From positions 1 to 6,838 of the IMG/VR virus record IMGVR_UViG_3300024265_000604: a stretch of DNA of 6,838 nt; one strand, given 5' to 3'. The notes below the pieces were generated by a model. The model did no database searches. It saw only the letters and a list, made by a program, of their open reading frames with translations, and was not told the DNA's origin. A program made the position numbers and the translations under genes. Positions 1-6,662 of this stretch are shown piece by piece; within the stretch, counting starts at the first letter, position 1, and every line of letters begins with the position of its first letter.

Positions 1-699
1 TCATTCTTTTTTACCTTTTAATTCTATATAAACAAATGGTTCATAATTTAAATCAATTTCATTATCAAACATTTTCTTTTTAACAATATCATGAGTAATC
101 TTACCATTTAATAAAGGTTTGATTATATCTACTATTTCAATTACTCTTAATCTTAATCTTTTTGGATAATTTTTAAGAATTTTAAATTGTAAACCTTTCT
201 TTCTATGAGATTCTACTTTTTCATAAGTATTATATAATTTAAAGTATTTTTTTGCTTTATTATATGGTAATGTAAATTTACCATAAGTATTATTATTTAC
301 ATCATGAAAAACATAATTAAAATTATCTGAATTAAAGTTATTTCTATGTTGGCATTCAATAATAAAATTAGCTTGTTTTCTAAATCTTTTATCTATAGTT
401 GATAACATTGGAGTAGTTAAATAAATATCTGTAAAAGATTTTCTTGTATGAAATATTATACTTGATATATATTCATTTAGAGAACTTGAACTTACTCTTG
501 ATTCAATCCAAGAATAACCCTCATCCATTAGAATAACAATATTATCTTTAAGTTCAAATAAATCTGGAATACCTAATTCTCTATAGTTAGGAATATTAAT
601 TTTAAAATTACTCCAAATTTCTCTATTTTCCAATAAAATTAAAAGAAGCATAATTAATGTTTTACCACTTCCTAAATTACCTATTACTATAACTAACAT
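1..699 (-). CDS. Zot/inovirus pI-like P-loop ATPase (putative virion assembly/extrusion ATPase), 232 aa
   Basis: N-terminal strand plus Walker A GNLGSGKT, REIWSNF after the P-loop helix, Walker B IVILMDEG, and HTRKSFTDIYLTTPMLSTIDKRFR matching the Zot/pI pattern (RH/RK-x-x-x-D-h-h-h-h-T-[QP]...IDK-x-h-R). No TM segment evident. Confidence 0.85.
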   Translation of the reverse strand: MLVIVIGNLGSGKTLIMLLLILLENREIWSNFKINIPNYRELGIPDLFELKDNIVILMDEGYSWIESRVSSSSLNEYISSIIFHTRKSFTDIYLTTPMLSTIDKRFRKQANFIIECQHRNNFNSDNFNYVFHDVNNNTYGKFTLPYNKAKKYFKLYNTYEKVESHRKKGLQFKILKNYPKRLRLRVIEIVDIIKPLLNGKITHDIVKKKMFDNEIDLNYEPFVYIELKGKKE

Positions 700-2194: not shown

Positions 2195-2425
2195 TTAGCC
2201 TCTACTTTTTTGAACATTATTTCCAATTATAAATATTAATACAATTAAACATAAAATTATACTCCATAATGGTAATAATGCTGACCATACACAAAAACCA
2301 CAAAATATAGTTAGCCAACAAAAGAAAGTTTCTATATCTTTATAAGTTAAATAGGTTAATGCTAAAGCCAAACCAAAAGTTATAGATAAACCTAATACTA
2401 TATTTGTAGGAGTTATAACAACCAT
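2195..2425 (-). CDS. Small 3-TM membrane protein, 76 aa (putative minor virion/tail protein)
   Basis: Almost wholly hydrophobic, with an LLPLW turn before the last helix. Starts 3 nt after the adhesin stop. Confidence 0.8.
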   Translation of the reverse strand: MVVITPTNIVLGLSITFGLALALTYLTYKDIETFFCWLTIFCGFCVWSALLPLWSIILCLIVLIFIIGNNVQKSRG

Positions 2426-2428
2426 TTA

Positions 2429-5374
2429 TTAAACCACTTCCTTTTTACTTTTAAAGAATACCATTATTATACTTGGAAATACAATAATAAAAAATAACCA
2501 ATATGGAATTAAAGTACTAATTGTTAATACAAGAGAAAATAATATAAATAAAGGTACTATTACTTGTTTTCCAAACCTACTTGAAAATAAAAATGTAGGT
2601 ACTAAAATAATAATTAATGGAATCATCATATTAAGTAATGATTCTGTAATAACACTAACATCTATATCTATAACATCTATTAATTCTACATTATAAATAT
2701 AACCAGAAGTTAAACCTGTTATTACATTATTATCCTTATCGGTTATTAATACTATTATATCTCTTACAGTATTGTCTTGAGATAAAAGAAATCTTGTAGT
2801 TGTAAGTGTATAAGGTATTGGAAGTATTTGAGAAATATCAGTATAATTAATTCTTATATAACCATAAGCATTATTATCCATATCAGACCTAAATGAAAAA
2901 GCATAATCAGAACTATTAACATCATTAATATTAAAAGTGGCTTGAATGTATTCTAAATTTGTATCGTCTGCTATATGTAAGAAATATAATCTATTATTAG
3001 AAACATAAAAATAACTGTCATCTATATCTACTCCAGAATGTTCAAACTCTAAATTATATTCTATAACACCTTGCTTTAATATAACTCCATCTATTTTGAA
3101 TGTAGAAATATTAAAATAATGATTTTGAAGAGTAAAAACAAAAGTAATATTAGCTATTGTTGTATCAGAATCATAGCCATTAATAGTATGAACTTCATTA
3201 TAATAATTTCTCATACTTCTGAATTCTGTCATTGACATACCAACAGTATAACTTCCTTCTACTAATCCAATATTAAAAGAACCATTAGCTTTTAAAAATA
3301 ATAAATTATTAATTTGAGTATTCCATGTTTGAGCAATATTATAAACAGCATAAGCCAATTCTGGAGTTTGAGAAATTCCATTATAATATACTCCAATATT
3401 ATCTATATTCCAATGTAAATCAGCATAATCGACAGAATGAACTAAAAGAGAAATCTTAGTTAATCCATTTTTTCCAGTGTAAAAGTTTGGTACTGTATAA
3501 GAATCATCATAAACTCCATCTATATAAAAATCAATGAAGGTTATATCTAATTCATAATTAATAAATACTACTACTCTATAAATTTTTCCAGTGGTAATAT
3601 CGTCTCTTACTTGTAAACCCCAAAAATCATCTACAGCTTGAAAAATATTCATAGAACCATTACTTCTAAAATCCAGCATTGCTATATAATTATCGTCTGA
3701 TGATTCTATTATTAAAGTGTGTGTACCGTTATTTCCAGTCATATCCATCATTTCAAACTCTATATCTACAGTAATAAAATTATCTGTAGAAGTAAAATCA
3801 TCATTAAGTATTCCTATTGTTTGAGCTAATCCATCTGTAGAAAGTTTATATACTCTGTCATCAGATTCATTAGGGTCTTGAATTATTATAGCTAATTCAT
3901 TTTCAACTCCAGTTTGCTCCCATCCTAAAGCTTCTTTAGTATTTACTGGAATTAAAGTATTTATACCACTTAAAGCAAATTCATATTTATCTACTTCTTT
4001 AAAACCAGTAATATTAAGATATGGAATAAGATTATCGCCAATTATATAACTTGGTAAATTATCGCCAAGATTATAATAAGGGTCTGCTATATTACCATAA
4101 TTGTCTAAGAACATAGAATTGACAGAATCGCCTTGAGCTTGAATGGTAAATGCGTCAATTCCATTACCTCCCATATTATCATGAGTAGCTTGATTATCAA
4201 CCTTTAAAACTAAATCTACATAAAAATCAAAAGTATTATCAGCCCTCCATGTAATTCTAATATGATAAAATATATCATTACTAACAGCTTGTATTAATTG
4301 CCAAACATCAAACTCATCTTGATATTCTAAATTACCACCGTCTATTTTAAGATAAACAATAATTCTACCAACCCCTTGATCTGCTATTGGCATATGCCAA
4401 TATTGATTAACCTCATTTGTTCCAAGATAATATTCAATTGTACCAGAAGTAGAAGGAGTAAAGTAATGAGATATAAGAGGGTCTTCTGCTGGAGTTATAT
4501 CATCTGTAAGATTAAAGACTTTAGTAAAAGAATCAAAATTAGGGCTTACAATACAATCTCCATCAAAAAGAATTGAACCAGAAACTATATTAGGTAAATC
4601 TCCAATATTTTGTTCAGTAAAAGTATAAGTAGCATTAATACCAGACCAAGAATAACCAATTGCGTCAAAATATATTTGGTAATTACCTGTAGAACCAGTT
4701 CTAATAAACAAACCTTCCAAATTATCTGCTACAGTTCTAAAATCAATACCAGAAAGAATTTGAATATTATCTAAATAAAAATCAAACAAATCAGAAGTAC
4801 AATTGAAAATTATTTTACTATGATACCATTTGTTAGAAATTACACTTATACCCGTATCTGTTAAATCCTCTCCATCATAATATTTAAACTTGCCAGATAT
4901 CGTAAGAATTGATATCATTGTATCAGTATCATTTTGTAAATAGAAAAGTACTGTCTTAGCTGAATCAGAAAAATACCACCACCACTCAACAATACCAGAA
5001 ACTATATTATCATCAAAAAAGTTAGTCATGTCTATATTTCCTGCTACACTATGATTCATAAGTATTACTTTAGAATGATTATCGAAATCACTAATTACAT
5101 TAAGATTACCCCCAGTTTCATCTATATTACTCCATCCTAAAGGAATAGTTCCATCTATATCATTTTCAAAACTATAAGTAGCATTATAATGACCAGAATA
5201 ATAACTTGAATTTTTAACATTAAAAGTATTGTCAAACTCATTTATAGTAGAATCAATTAAAACATTATCATCAAAAGTATAAGAAATATCTGTAGCTCCT
5301 TTAACAAAATTAGTAGGAAATAAAAATAAAGATAATATTAAAAATACACTTATTATTATATATTTTCTATTCAT
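2429..5374 (-). CDS. Large secreted, membrane-anchored glycoprotein with three ConA/LamG-like beta-sandwich repeats; putative receptor-binding adhesin/tail protein, 981 aa
   Basis: Signal peptide MNRKYIIISVFLILSLFLFP...VKG/A. Repeated motifs NKWYHSKIIF...FDFYLD / DIFYHIRITW...FDFYVD / KIYRVVVFI...IDFYIDG and YFDAIG / FLDNYG / NIDNIG. At least 15 N-X-S/T sequons counted by eye. Three C-terminal TM helices followed by KSKK. Confidence 0.82.
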   Translation of the reverse strand: MNRKYIIISVFLILSLFLFPTNFVKGATDISYTFDDNVLIDSTINEFDNTFNVKNSSYYSGHYNATYSFENDIDGTIPLGWSNIDETGGNLNVISDFDNHSKVILMNHSVAGNIDMTNFFDDNIVSGIVEWWWYFSDSAKTVLFYLQNDTDTMISILTISGKFKYYDGEDLTDTGISVISNKWYHSKIIFNCTSDLFDFYLDNIQILSGIDFRTVADNLEGLFIRTGSTGNYQIYFDAIGYSWSGINATYTFTEQNIGDLPNIVSGSILFDGDCIVSPNFDSFTKVFNLTDDITPAEDPLISHYFTPSTSGTIEYYLGTNEVNQYWHMPIADQGVGRIIVYLKIDGGNLEYQDEFDVWQLIQAVSNDIFYHIRITWRADNTFDFYVDLVLKVDNQATHDNMGGNGIDAFTIQAQGDSVNSMFLDNYGNIADPYYNLGDNLPSYIIGDNLIPYLNITGFKEVDKYEFALSGINTLIPVNTKEALGWEQTGVENELAIIIQDPNESDDRVYKLSTDGLAQTIGILNDDFTSTDNFITVDIEFEMMDMTGNNGTHTLIIESSDDNYIAMLDFRSNGSMNIFQAVDDFWGLQVRDDITTGKIYRVVVFINYELDITFIDFYIDGVYDDSYTVPNFYTGKNGLTKISLLVHSVDYADLHWNIDNIGVYYNGISQTPELAYAVYNIAQTWNTQINNLLFLKANGSFNIGLVEGSYTVGMSMTEFRSMRNYYNEVHTINGYDSDTTIANITFVFTLQNHYFNISTFKIDGVILKQGVIEYNLEFEHSGVDIDDSYFYVSNNRLYFLHIADDTNLEYIQATFNINDVNSSDYAFSFRSDMDNNAYGYIRINYTDISQILPIPYTLTTTRFLLSQDNTVRDIIVLITDKDNNVITGLTSGYIYNVELIDVIDIDVSVITESLLNMMIPLIIILVPTFLFSSRFGKQVIVPLFILFSLVLTISTLIPYWLFFIIVFPSIIMVFFKSKKEVV

Positions 5375-5541
5375 AATACAATACCAGATACAAGTGAAAT
5401 AATTAGCATTACTAAAGCAATTAATAATATTGACTTAATTAATAAATATAATTCTTTAAAAGTTTTGTCAATATCCTTTTGATTAGGTTCTATTTTCTTT
5501 TCCGGAATAATAATTAGTTCTTTCTTTTCTGTATCATCCAT
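5371..5541 (-). CDS. Small protein with charged N-terminus and C-terminal TM helix, 56 aa (not in ORF track)
   Basis: Manual translation: MDDTEKKELIIIPEKKIEPNQKDIDKTFKELYLLIKSILLIALVMLIISLVSGIVL*. Its TGA overlaps the adhesin ATG (ATGA, 5374-5371) and it fills the gap between MCP and adhesin. Confidence 0.78.
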   Translation of the reverse strand: MDDTEKKELIIIPEKKIEPNQKDIDKTFKELYLLIKSILLIALVMLIISLVSGIVL

Positions 5542-5558
5542 ATTTTTCAAACCAGTTC

Positions 5559-5583
5559 AAAATAAAATAAAAAAAATAAAAAA
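5559..5583 (-). terminator. Oligo-T archaeal-type terminator downstream of the capsid gene
   Basis: Minus strand reads TTTTTTATTTTTTTTATTTTATTTT, starting about 26 nt after the MCP stop, with no GC hairpin. Confidence 0.6.
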
Positions 5584-5609
5584 TGTGAAATCAGAGAATT
5601 AACGTATAA

Positions 5610-5852
5610 TTAGCTTGAACGTGCTTTAGGTAAAAACATCATAACTACGGAAATAATTGCTATAATAGGAAGTAAGGTGACCAAAAGTACTAAAACTGTA
5701 GGGTCAATAACGTCAGCCAGAGTATCGCCAGATGTGGCATTTACAATTACATTTCCCGCATTACCAATTAATCCGAGAGCTATAGGGAAAATTACAGCTA
5801 TAATAATTAATGCGACAGCTAAAGTTATAACCTTTCTATATGATTCAGCCAT
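5610..5852 (-). CDS. Putative major capsid protein of spindle-shaped archaeal virus type (two hydrophobic helices, hairpin), 80 aa
   Basis: MAESYRK-VITLAVALIIIAVIFPIALGLIG-loop with NAT sequon-DPTVLVLLVTLLPIIAIISVVMMFL-PKARSS. Each helix has an internal proline, as in SSV1 VP1 (recalled as IGIVLLPVI...TLLNLVPLFYIL), and the tail is basic. First gene of the operon, followed by a terminator. ATG at 5852 is preferred over the TTG at 5861 used by the track. Confidence 0.78.
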   Translation of the reverse strand: MAESYRKVITLAVALIIIAVIFPIALGLIGNAGNVIVNATSGDTLADVIDPTVLVLLVTLLPIIAIISVVMMFLPKARSS

Positions 5853-5884
5853 TTTTATCAAAAAATCTTTTTTTTATGAAAAAT

Positions 5885-5936
5885 TTTATAAATTTAGTTA
5901 TAAATAGTAATGTTTGTTCACTTTTAAGGTTTTTGG
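5885..5936 (-). promoter_or_regulatory. Candidate archaeal promoter(s) for the structural operon
   Basis: Minus strand has CCAAAAAC-CTTAAAAG (BRE-like plus TATA-like, 5936-5921) and a second candidate TTTATAAA at 5892-5885. The AT-rich background prevents choosing between them. Confidence 0.4.
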
Positions 5937-5963
5937 TTGAAAATATTTCATATTTTTCTTTAC

Positions 5964-6012
5964 TACTAAAGAATTTATAATTATACTAAAGAATTGATAA
6001 TTATACTAAAGA
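5964..6012. repeat. 20-bp tandem direct repeat, about 2.5 copies
   Basis: TACTAAAGAATTTATAATTA (5964-5983), TACTAAAGAATTGATAATTA (5984-6003), TACTAAAGA (6004-6012). One mismatch between the full copies. Confidence 0.9.
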
Positions 6013-6020
6013 TTTAAATA
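6007..6020 (+). promoter_or_regulatory. Archaeal TATA box with purine-rich upstream element for the small-gene arm (probably leaderless mRNA)
   Basis: TAAAGA-TTTAAATA. The box at 6013-6020 is centred about 26 nt upstream of ATG 6043, the usual archaeal TATA-to-start spacing, and that ATG has no SD. Confidence 0.6.
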
Positions 6021-6042
6021 GTAGTTATTCCTTTATTTAATT

Positions 6043-6195
6043 ATGACACATTTAAAAATGAATGCTTTTGAAAAAGATGATATAATTACTAAATTAAATA
6101 AAATTTATTTAAATTCTAAGAACTTAAATAAAACAGATATTAAAGCTATAATCAGAGTTATGGATATAGTTCTTAATAAAATAGAAAATAAGTGA
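6043..6195 (+). CDS. Small hypothetical helical protein, 50 aa (not in ORF track)
   Basis: Manual translation: MTHLKMNAFEKDDIITKLNKIYLNSKNLNKTDIKAIIRVMDIVLNKIENK*. Positioned correctly behind a TATA box. Alternative start at ATG 6058. Confidence 0.65.
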   Translation: MTHLKMNAFEKDDIITKLNKIYLNSKNLNKTDIKAIIRVMDIVLNKIENK

Positions 6196-6201
6196 ATAAA
6201 A

Positions 6202-6351
6202 ATGGCAACAAGAATAATAGAATGGAAAAATGCTGACAAAACTGAATATGAAATTATGAAATGGATATACAATTATAATAAACATGAAGTTTATAGATAT
6301 TTTAGAAATTCAGCGGGAATAATAACTAAGGATAAAATAGGAAGTTTATAA
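6202..6351 (+). CDS. Small hypothetical protein, 49 aa (not in ORF track)
   Basis: Manual translation: MATRIIEWKNADKTEYEIMKWIYNYNKHEVYRYFRNSAGIITKDKIGSL*. Preceded by AAGTGAATAA (6190-6199), 6 nt after the previous stop. Confidence 0.68.
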   Translation: MATRIIEWKNADKTEYEIMKWIYNYNKHEVYRYFRNSAGIITKDKIGSL

Positions 6352-6376
6352 ATTAACCAAAAGTGAATAATTATGA
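6351..6376 (+). repeat. Repeated gene-leader element, copy 1 (contains GTGA SD-like motif and start codon)
   Basis: AATTAACCAAAAGTGAA-TAATTATGA, identical to 6636-6662 except for a 1-nt indel. Confidence 0.85.
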
Positions 6377-6603
6377 GATTGATTGAAAAAAATATTAAAG
6401 AAATGAAAACAAAACGATATGGAGTAAAAACATTATTAATTTTTAAAAGTAATTCTAATTTTCATGGTTTTATTGAATATACAGCTACAAGAAAAATGCC
6501 TAATGGTAAGGTTTTTAGAGTAGATAAAGCAATATATAATCAAAATGGCAATCATATAGCTTATTATCCAAAAACAAAACCAATGTTTAATACTAAGTTT
6601 TAA
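6373..6603 (+). CDS. Small basic beta-rich hypothetical protein, 76 aa
   Basis: ORF track. ATG lies within the repeated leader and a T-tract follows the stop. Lys/Arg-rich, no recognised family. Confidence 0.72.
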   Translation: MRLIEKNIKEMKTKRYGVKTLLIFKSNSNFHGFIEYTATRKMPNGKVFRVDKAIYNQNGNHIAYYPKTKPMFNTKF

Positions 6604-6614
6604 TTTTTCTTTTT
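6604..6614 (+). terminator. Candidate oligo-T terminator
   Basis: TTTTTCTTTTT immediately after the TAA of 6373-6603. Confidence 0.45.
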
Positions 6615-6635
6615 GAAAGTTAATTAGATAAACCT

Positions 6636-6662
6636 AATTAACCAAAAGTGAAATAATTATGA
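6636..6662 (+). repeat. Repeated gene-leader element, copy 2
   Basis: AATTAACCAAAAGTGAAATAATTATGA, containing the ATG at 6659. Confidence 0.85.

Follow-up and report, generated by a model that had tools for sequence, protein, structure and literature searches.

A complete jelly-roll domain inserted in frame within a related jelly roll of a wyrdvirus-like adhesin

The window analysed here is a 6,838 bp stretch of IMG/VR record IMGVR_UViG_3300024265_000604, a fragment labelled as provirus, with about 23% G+C and every long open reading frame (ORF) on the minus strand. It represents part of an Asgard archaeal virus, spindle-shaped and wyrdvirus-like (related to WyrdV1), and its adhesin gene (2429-5374, minus strand) encodes a 981 aa protein, P0001, in which one jelly-roll domain (repeat 2) lies inserted in frame between the body and the C-terminal tail of another (repeat 1). 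P0001 matches the WyrdV1 adhesin QYW08118 over most of its length (tblastn E 3e-58, 28% identity, 98% query coverage) and occupies the same place in the morphogenetic module, between a His1-like major capsid protein (MCP) upstream and a pI/Zot-like ATPase downstream. The MCP-like ORF (5610-5861, minus strand) encodes 83 aa with two hydrophobic segments and resembles the His1-like MCP of WyrdV1; a 59 aa protein with one hydrophobic segment (5371-5550, minus strand) adjoins the adhesin gene upstream; and five small ORFs downstream of the adhesin gene are followed by an ORF (1-699, minus strand) matching Zot-like and pI morphogenesis ATPase PHROGs (E 1e-9). The order MCP, small membrane protein, adhesin, small genes and pI-like ATPase is the same in WyrdV1, although WyrdV1 has two MCP copies and the window only one. 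The WyrdV1 protein has been described as the receptor-binding adhesin of a conserved morphogenetic module, its tip location and receptor binding being proposed by analogy with fuselloviruses and halspiviruses (bioRxiv 10.1101/2021.07.29.453957), in a text that goes no further into its architecture. It is annotated as a carbohydrate-binding, receptor-binding adhesin, but its module content differs from that of P0001. Searches of PHROGs, NCBIfam and PDB sequences with the adhesin returned nothing useful.

From its N-terminus to its C-terminus, P0001 consists of a signal peptide, three jelly rolls, a stalk rich in beta strands and a membrane anchor. A full-length AlphaFold2 (AF2) model generated from a 78-row alignment has a mean predicted local distance difference test (pLDDT) score of 87.7 and a predicted template modelling (pTM) score of 0.69. 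The protein begins with a hydrophobic, signal-like N-terminus (residues 1-26; 5297-5374, minus strand, as for all the segments that follow), which is modelled as a helix at residues 4-17 with low pLDDT and is also hydrophobic in aligned homologues. Conserved strands ahead of the first jelly roll (residues 27-63; 5186-5296), hereafter the pre strands, are 78-84% identical to those of the relatives P0003 and P0005, and lead into the body of repeat 1 (residues 64-244; 4643-5185), which extends from NATYSF to YFDAIGYSWS without a tail and is just 36-37% identical to its counterparts in the same two proteins. Repeat 2 (residues 245-440; 4055-4642) extends from GINATYTF to its own tail, PYYNLGDNL, located by motif position at residues 432-440 (4055-4081). 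The bodies of repeats 1 and 2 were delimited with a domain hidden Markov model (HMM) and by structural alignment with VIA-align (Z 15.7 and 22.4, respectively). The next nine residues, PSYIIGDNL (441-449; 4028-4054), are assigned as the displaced canonical tail of repeat 1 on the basis of the spliced consensus and the pLDDT change described below; tail residues Y443 and N448 are nearly invariant among homologues. Residues 450-666 (3377-4027) comprise a bridging strand at 451-461 (residues 450-461 corresponding to 3992-4027) and repeat 3, an L-type-lectin-like jelly roll delimited with VIA-align and ending in IDNIGVYYNG. The conserved beta-rich stalk (residues 667-900; 2675-3376), with long strands in the model, is 79% identical to that of P0003 and P0005, and the membrane anchor (residues 901-981 plus the stop codon; 2429-2674), with hydrophobic helices at 904-934, 936-952 and 958-978, is 81-84% identical. 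These C-terminal helices would hold the adhesin in the virion, by analogy with the fusellovirus and halspivirus tip adhesins cited for WyrdV1.

A search of 1.84 billion representative proteins identified 949 homologues of P0001, of which the best 150 were inspected. An adhesin set of 120 homologues with the C-terminal module (760-1100 aa) showed a bimodal length distribution, with 69 short forms of 770-868 aa, six proteins of 904-955 aa and 45 of 966-1094 aa, P0001 included. Among the best 150, a further 24 multi-repeat proteins (900-6545 aa) carry many domains of the repeat-1 type without the adhesin C-terminal part. Their domains end in D-A-I-G-Y-S-W-D-P-N-Y-N-I-G-D-N-L, with the tail tyrosine exactly 10 residues past the aspartate in 64 of 78 cases, and the spacing is the same before an Ig-like spacer or directly before the next domain. 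Since the canonical tail is kept whatever follows the domain, the Y-x-I-G-x-N tail belongs to the domain unit. The units start with G-Y-Y-P-A-T-Y-G-F-E, the counterpart of G-H-Y-N-A-T-Y-S-F-E in the adhesins, and the canonical unit of the family hence runs from G-x-Y-N/P-A-T-Y-x-F through D-A-I-G-Y-S-W-D-P-N-Y-N-I-G-D-N.

In P0001 this unit is broken at one precise point. YFDAIGYSWS (residues 235-244) is followed at once by GINATYTF (from 245), repeat 2 closes with FLDNYGNIAD (422-431) and its own tail, and PSYIIGDNL follows at 441-449. Whereas DAIGYSWDPNYNIGDN is uninterrupted in the short forms and in 64 of the 78 multi-repeat units, 196 residues separate W-S from P-S-Y in P0001. Excision of residues 245-440 (588 bp) joins DAIGYSWS to PSYIIGDNL and restores the family consensus DAIGYSWDPNYNIGDNL, spacing included, with 13 of 17 consensus positions matched. 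Against a family position matrix derived from the 78 domain ends of the 24 multi-repeat proteins, the spliced junction scored 42.2 bits and the unspliced one 5.7. In the domain HMM, repeat 1 (62-244) covers profile positions 1-185, stopping short of the tail positions, and repeat 2 (247-441) covers positions 3-195 of 199, tail included. The insert is therefore an autonomous, complete domain by HMM coverage, and it is also complete in two structure models and found as the sole head domain of the short-form adhesin P0063. The two repeats have diverged widely: self-BLAST of the whole protein found no internal repeat, and comparison of repeat 1 with repeat 2 segment against segment gave 23% identity (E 1e-4). 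A single unequal crossover would yield body-tail-body-tail or body-body-tail and never the order body 1, body 2, tail 2, tail 1, whereas insertion of one complete unit between body 1 and tail 1 accounts for it in a single step. Relative to the canonical unit, repeat 2 is a precise in-frame insertion, nested in repeat 1 at the sequence level. An earlier sequence-only reading of this stretch had proposed that a whole lectin-like domain was inserted in frame here and that its removal rejoins repeat 1 to a tail; both proposals are largely supported by these results, and translation and motif positions confirmed the motifs, repeats and coordinates on which they were based.

The point of insertion is a variable slot across the adhesin set. 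In 69 of the 120 adhesins it is empty, the sequence reading DA[IV]G[YF]SW, three residues and Y-x-I-G-x-N without interruption, and each of these short forms is covered end to end by one HMM. The long forms carry 169-222 extra residues exactly at this junction, between the tryptophan and the tyrosine (W|Y). Alignment of the 120 full-length sequences with MAFFT misplaced some short forms into insert columns, and insert classes were therefore taken from length and HMM parses. LamG-like modules of several lineages fill the slot in 35 of the 120 proteins (28 with one tail and seven with two), one of which, P0042, has a weak Pfam Laminin_G_3 match. The slot modules of another 16 are not LamG-like; they include about four repeats of the type F-D-G-N-S-F-W-I-V-D, recognised by the repeat motif in P0009, P0046, P0047, P0056 and P0071, and a further group with some 115-150 extra residues. 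A language-model protein-atlas look-up gave only NHL/SGL propeller leads for a propeller-like insert (scores 0.85-0.89) and no lead for a 128 aa slot insert. The W|Y junction is thus a slot that is empty, holds a LamG module of one of several lineages or holds an unrelated module, and homologues lacking the block or carrying another domain at the same junction, which the sequence-only reading had suggested looking for, are common.

The doubled tail might be explained in another way. The two 27-base tails of P0001 share 19 of 27 bases, a likeness of at least 19/27 having P = 0.00015 among random in-frame 27-mer pairs of the adhesin gene, and they contain an 11-nt exact repeat, ATTATCGCCAA (4031-4041 and 4058-4068), over the G-D-N codons, with exactly two occurrences and with both copies using GGC, which is rare here (5 of the 61 Gly codons of the gene). 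P0001 could accordingly be a plain tandem array, in which repeats 1 and 2 arose by duplication of the body and the doubled x-Y-x-I/L-G-D-N-L by a 27-bp linker duplication ahead of repeat 3. Such an origin fits the HMM parse 3-244 plus 247-978, the coil modelled for both tails, with pLDDT below 50 in the first, and the single tail of most LamG-like long forms. It is countered by P0063, a 788 aa short form whose only head domain is 45% identical to repeat 2 over 205 aa, tail included: the P0063 tail AYYEIGDNL aligns with PYYNLGDNL, and is followed directly by the conserved segment that in P0001 comes after the second tail. The first tail of P0001 is thus orthologous to the single tail of P0063 and arrived together with repeat 2, and the second belongs to the scaffold. 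Double tails also occur in seven divergent adhesins (P0001, P0011, P0034, P0035, P0042, P0044 and P0123; 25-35% identity), with a period of 9 aa in six of them and 13 aa in P0034, and are scattered on the tree described below (seven changes, at least five of them forced). Tail-to-tail DNA identity is about as high in P0011 (17/27) and P0042 (16/27), both some 28-30% identical to P0001, indicating that the likeness of the tails reflects the motif and not recency. Finally, unrelated modules are found at the same W|Y junction. We consider this origin unlikely. The more specific possibility of a recent local 27-bp duplication, a local duplication being named in the sequence-only reading among the findings that would refute it, is not supported: the first tail is closest to those of P0063, P0044 and P0035 rather than to its neighbour, and the two tails are about as alike in DNA as the motif makes them in distant relatives.

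A second exact repeat, of 14 nt, TATAAGTAGCATTA, covers the NATY codons opening repeat 2 (4624-4637) and repeat 1 (5173-5186). It too has exactly two occurrences, lies within a repeat family of 38 nt at 74% identity with 549 nt spacing and, as for ATTATCGCCAA, two matches were reached in 0 of 200 shuffles. Because both repeats lie on conserved GDN and NATY codons, motif conservation explains them, and they were rejected, as unproven, as recombination scars in their own right. The two NATY copies bracket the repeat 1 body, and recombination between them, were it to occur, would delete repeat 1 and leave a P0063-like short form with a repeat-2-type head, a speculative outcome. One contig of sequencing run X2 has a joint from 5183 to 4646 with 14 other letters between, at a repeat and with low likeness. 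The joints in this run have short sides of 21-40 nt at 85% likeness and were read not as deletion alleles but as islands of conservation in relatives that have diverged. At 4577-4592 and 4994-5009 there is also an exact direct repeat of 16 nt, ACCAGAAACTATATTA; it encodes NIVSG in both repeat 2 (residues 262-266) and repeat 1 (residues 122-126), at non-equivalent positions of the jelly roll.

To place these modules in the history of the adhesins, an unrooted maximum-likelihood (ML) tree of the 120 proteins was generated from the 537 alignment columns downstream of the slot, together with a tree of 217 domain units. On the downstream-part tree, presence or absence of the insert requires at least 28 changes, at least 21 of which are forced by branches with Shimodaira-Hasegawa-like approximate likelihood ratio test (SH-aLRT) support of at least 95%, and several well-supported sister pairs differ in slot state (P0039/P0059, P0010/P0064, P0043/P0053 and P0106/P0113). 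P0001 groups there with P0003, P0004 and P0005 (99% support). On the domain tree, by contrast, its repeat 2 groups with repeat 2 of P0044, the P0063 domain and units of P0152 and P0110 (95% SH-aLRT), that of P0004 with P0016, P0039 and P0007 (100% support), and those of P0003 and P0005 with P0008 (95% support). The identities follow the same pattern: repeat 2 of P0001 is 45% identical to the sole domain of the distant P0063, yet it shares only 24-28% identity with the repeat 2 domains of the nearest relatives, whose stalks are 65-79% identical to that of P0001.

Segment identities extend this pattern to all three modules. Between P0001 and P0003, identity amounts to 78% in the pre strands, 37% in repeat 1, 28% in repeat 2, 60% in the tail and bridging strand, 29% in repeat 3, 79% in the stalk and 84% in the anchor; the corresponding values for P0003 and P0005 are 89, 34, 86, 80, 36, 84 and 89%. 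In the latter pair, whose breakpoints were mapped at the protein level, identity flips stepwise between 84-96% and 34-36% at NATYSFENE, DA[IV]GYSW, EV[DN]K[YF]E[FY]AL and GVYxNGISQ, the conserved strands with which repeats 1 and 3 open and close. Together, the segment identities and stepwise switches indicate that all three jelly-roll bodies behave as cassettes in a conserved scaffold. The histories of module and scaffold disagree, and the breakpoints coincide with the conserved border motifs. The suggestion of the sequence-only reading that the borders could act as recombination points is therefore supported by the P0003/P0005 mosaics, but not by the exact repeats of the window, which are not demonstrated scars. 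The signal peptide of P0003 and P0005 also falls in the conserved 84-96% part, and the pair appears to be a clean case of two cassettes, the bodies of repeats 1 and 3, having been swapped in nature.

The divergence of the modules might alternatively have arisen in place, through one ancient duplication giving rise to repeat 2, vertical descent and fast diversification, with the short forms as deletions and no exchange between genes. Receptor-binding domains evolve fast, 19 diverged repeat-2 domains fall in one clade of the domain tree (96% support) and the changes on the unrooted tree may be gains or losses. Vertical descent does not readily accommodate, however, a repeat 2 closer to the domains of distant adhesins than to those of relatives with similar stalks, the incongruence of the domain and stalk trees with strong support on both, the stepwise borders of P0003 and P0005, with repeat 2 at 86% and repeats 1 and 3 at 34-36%, or the unrelated folds in the same slot. 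We regard it as less probable still than a tandem array. That the 588-bp block arose in assembly, by chimeric joining of two related adhesin genes, is the least credible explanation of all, for although the window is metagenomic, related viruses coexist in such samples (as in run X2) and conserved border motifs could mislead an assembler, a Logan contig of the source run spans 2400-5913 with no differences and no joint at 4055 or 4642 (the same sample, and hence of limited independence), the reading frame is intact and the order body-body-tail-tail recurs in six other proteins from other samples.

Structure models provided a further view of the nested modules. The full-length AF2 model places strands at 30-63, a 14-strand sandwich at 82-241 and a 15-strand sandwich at 268-428, followed by coil (429-446; residues 434-441 have pLDDT below 50), a helical turn of three residues (447-449), the long strand 451-461, a third sandwich extending to 664, the long-strand stalk and the three hydrophobic helices (904-978). 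By structure comparison the repeats are LamG/ConA-like jelly rolls, two-sheet sandwiches of about 13-15 strands. Repeat 2 (model residues 247..432) aligns with the jelly-roll domain of sialidase BT_1020 with the VIA-align Z of 22.4 given above. Repeat 1 aligns with GH16-type, GH131, glucuronan-lyase and calnexin/calreticulin jelly rolls (Z 13.5-15.7, the highest value for the model range 64..244), and repeat 3 with ERGIC-53, Emp46/47, legume lectins and the CBM2 module of phage J-1 Dit (Z 14-15), with ranges of 450-463..666 or 39-59..666. Each jelly roll is probably a glycan-binding head, although a shared fold does not by itself establish function.

The models also bear on the displaced tail. 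Repeat 1 alignments that stop at 242-246 include 160-171 residues, and those reaching 451-454 (2zzj, 3w9a, 1jhn and 8tzo) include 181-186, a gain of 10-15, at a root-mean-square deviation of 3.0-3.5, so that the segment after repeat 2 seems to stand in for an element at the C-terminal end of the repeat-1 fold; among single-domain PDB folds, several give repeat 1 alignments that extend to residues 447-454. When residues 245-700 were folded alone with an equivalent alignment, repeats 2 and 3 stayed confident (pLDDT mostly above 90 for repeat 2), but residues 436-449 fell below 50, compared with about 78 for 441-450 in the full model, and strand 451-461 was lost, its pLDDT decreasing from 90 to 46-72. 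These losses indicate that the tail and bridging strand depend on residues 27-244 and not on repeat 2 or 3, and suggest that the displaced tail returns to repeat 1 in three dimensions. Split-chain complex prediction of repeat 1 (27-244) with residues 441-480 gave 0.15, 0.68 and 0.27 in three runs, against a mark of 0.32, and a profile of 48 domain-plus-tail units searched against the PDB gave weak LamG-like matches only, none spanning the tail motif. The packing of PSYIIGDNL on repeat 1 that the sequence-only reading had raised thus finds indirect support in the pLDDT collapse without 27-244 and in the alignments reaching 447-454, from which we infer nesting in space as well as along the chain.

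Taken together, these observations make it probable that P0001 is a wyrdvirus-like adhesin of same-family jelly rolls, with repeat 2 nested at a variable slot and the bodies exchanged as cassettes. Repeat 2, a complete unit that carries its own tail, would have entered repeat 1 in frame, after the last strand and ahead of the tail; jelly-roll N- and C-termini lie side by side, and a whole unit could therefore be accommodated at this junction without disturbing the parent fold. We further infer that co-circulating adhesin genes, co-infecting or co-resident, trade the bodies of all three repeats by recombination in the short conserved border motifs, the strands with which each jelly roll begins and ends. 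The scaffold around them, from the signal peptide and pre strands through the tail with its bridging strand to the stalk and the membrane anchor, would remain constant, and adding or swapping a head would be expected to alter receptor specificity or avidity and hence host range.

Several points weigh against this reading of P0001. The short-form HMM parses the protein equally well in the two pieces expected of a plain body duplication, and the 28 single-tailed LamG-like long forms are ones for which nested and tandem arrangements are indistinguishable. No relative closer than about 50% identity was found, recombination is deduced from protein mosaics, and on the unrooted tree the changes of the insert may be gains or losses. 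No deletion variant was found in the source assembly, whose Logan contigs are colinear with the window over 2400-5913. As regards the models, both tails are coil rather than strand in each of the two, part of the pLDDT drop could be an effect of running AF2 on different alignments, and the alignment ranges are first and last residues, which sometimes stray (65..611, 121..431).

A deeper nesting is possible but is put forward only tentatively. Many repeat 3 alignments start at 39-59 instead of 449-476 and tend to include more aligned residues, so that strand 53-63, although it adjoins the start of repeat 1 in sequence, seems to lie in the repeat-3 sandwich beside strand 451-461. Repeat 1, with repeat 2 inside it, would then be an excursion from a repeat-3 hairpin, a plausible but unproven arrangement that fits the conservation pattern, identity being 60-89% in the pre strands and in the tail with its bridging strand and 24-37% in the bodies. 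The adhesin may accordingly be nested three deep and act as a general hub for plugging in modules, with repeat 2 in repeat 1 and repeat 1 between the repeat-3 strands 53-63 and 451-461; all termini would meet at one conserved junction serving both as structural core and as the recombination sites for head exchange, and heads might pass from one viral adhesin to another, possibly also to or from the giant multi-repeat proteins on Asgard host surfaces, which use the same domain-plus-tail unit.

Mosaic receptor-binding proteins, inserted sugar-binding modules in bacteriophages and domain-in-domain architecture are known already. Calnexin and calreticulin have a lectin domain split by the inserted P domain. 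As would be the case in P0001, a legume-lectin-type jelly roll is interrupted near its C-terminal end and the chain returns to finish the sandwich, and both structures (1jhn, 8tzo) can be aligned over 184-186 residues with repeat 1 extended to residues 452-453 (Z 13.7-14.0, 13-14% identity). Their insert, however, is an extended proline-rich arm and that of P0001 a second jelly roll, so that the likeness is one of fold and topology only. In the 'evolved' Dit proteins of lactic-acid-bacteria siphophages, carbohydrate-binding modules are inserted in a galectin-like domain. These are likewise viral host-recognition proteins with sugar-binding jelly rolls inside a beta-sandwich and inserts whose presence varies among related phages, and repeat 3 aligns with one such module (phage J-1 CBM2, PDB 5ly8; Z 14.3), but they are baseplate proteins of bacterial tailed phages without sequence relation to the membrane-anchored P0001. 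Bacteriophage tail fibres and receptor-binding proteins combine a conserved anchor with exchangeable distal modules that recombine at short conserved junctions. P0001 differs from them in that its modules are nested jelly rolls of a membrane-anchored protein of an archaeal spindle-shaped virus, and in that giant surface proteins of the host phylum are made of the same domain family too. The papers searched, the WyrdV1 preprint among them, describe no split domain, insertion slot or cassette mosaicism in the adhesins of wyrdviruses or in other archaeal viruses of spindle shape.

Asgard archaeal viruses have come to light almost entirely through metagenomics, and nothing has been learnt of host recognition by them, their host cells being those regarded as nearest to the eukaryotic ancestor. 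Putative exchangeable receptor-binding heads and their exact borders are now defined for a very large adhesin family, with 949 detectable homologues. The W|Y socket naturally tolerates whole-domain insertions and looks like a plug-in site for changing viral attachment, and the defined heads offer concrete constructs for glycan-binding and structural work as well as a marker for host-range shifts in sediments. As a natural case of nested domain insertion, a jelly roll set precisely into the tail of a member of its own family is unusually clean, and of interest to both archaeal virology and studies of protein architecture.

The viral adhesins and proteins of the presumed host phylum belong to one common domain family. 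Among four multi-repeat proteins looked up, those of the P0154 cluster come from Hermodarchaeota and Promethearchaeota metagenome-assembled genomes (MAGs), one of them on a 534-kb contig, and P0078 from a marine-sediment metagenome. The presence of the same domain unit in giant proteins of these MAGs hints at a domain pool shared by virus and host. In the giant multi-repeat proteins (P0154/P0156, P0090, P0060, P0051, P0105 and others), the domain-plus-tail unit usually alternates with a spacer of about 75 aa (GYSLDGQ..NKTILGNTTIP...HTIQVFGN). The 7.4-kb contig of P0152 (L003) carries, among small genes, a gene (3353-6055) for a 900 aa protein whose first domain is 44.5% identical to repeat 2 and which lacks the wyrdvirus stalk and anchor; this is possibly another mobile element using a repeat-2-type head module.

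Outside the adhesin gene, a 20-bp tandem repeat, TACTAAAGAATTTATAATTA (2.7 copies, 91% matches), occupies non-coding sequence at 5964-6016, upstream of the MCP gene and at a coding-strand switch, and could be a regulatory or origin-like element. The main Logan contig of the source run stops at 5913, contig depth in that run falls from about 33 to about 2 across 6075-6515, and go-back joints are present at 6598-6653 of the window. The right end of the window may thus be a variable region, a junction, given the provirus label of the record, or an assembly seam.

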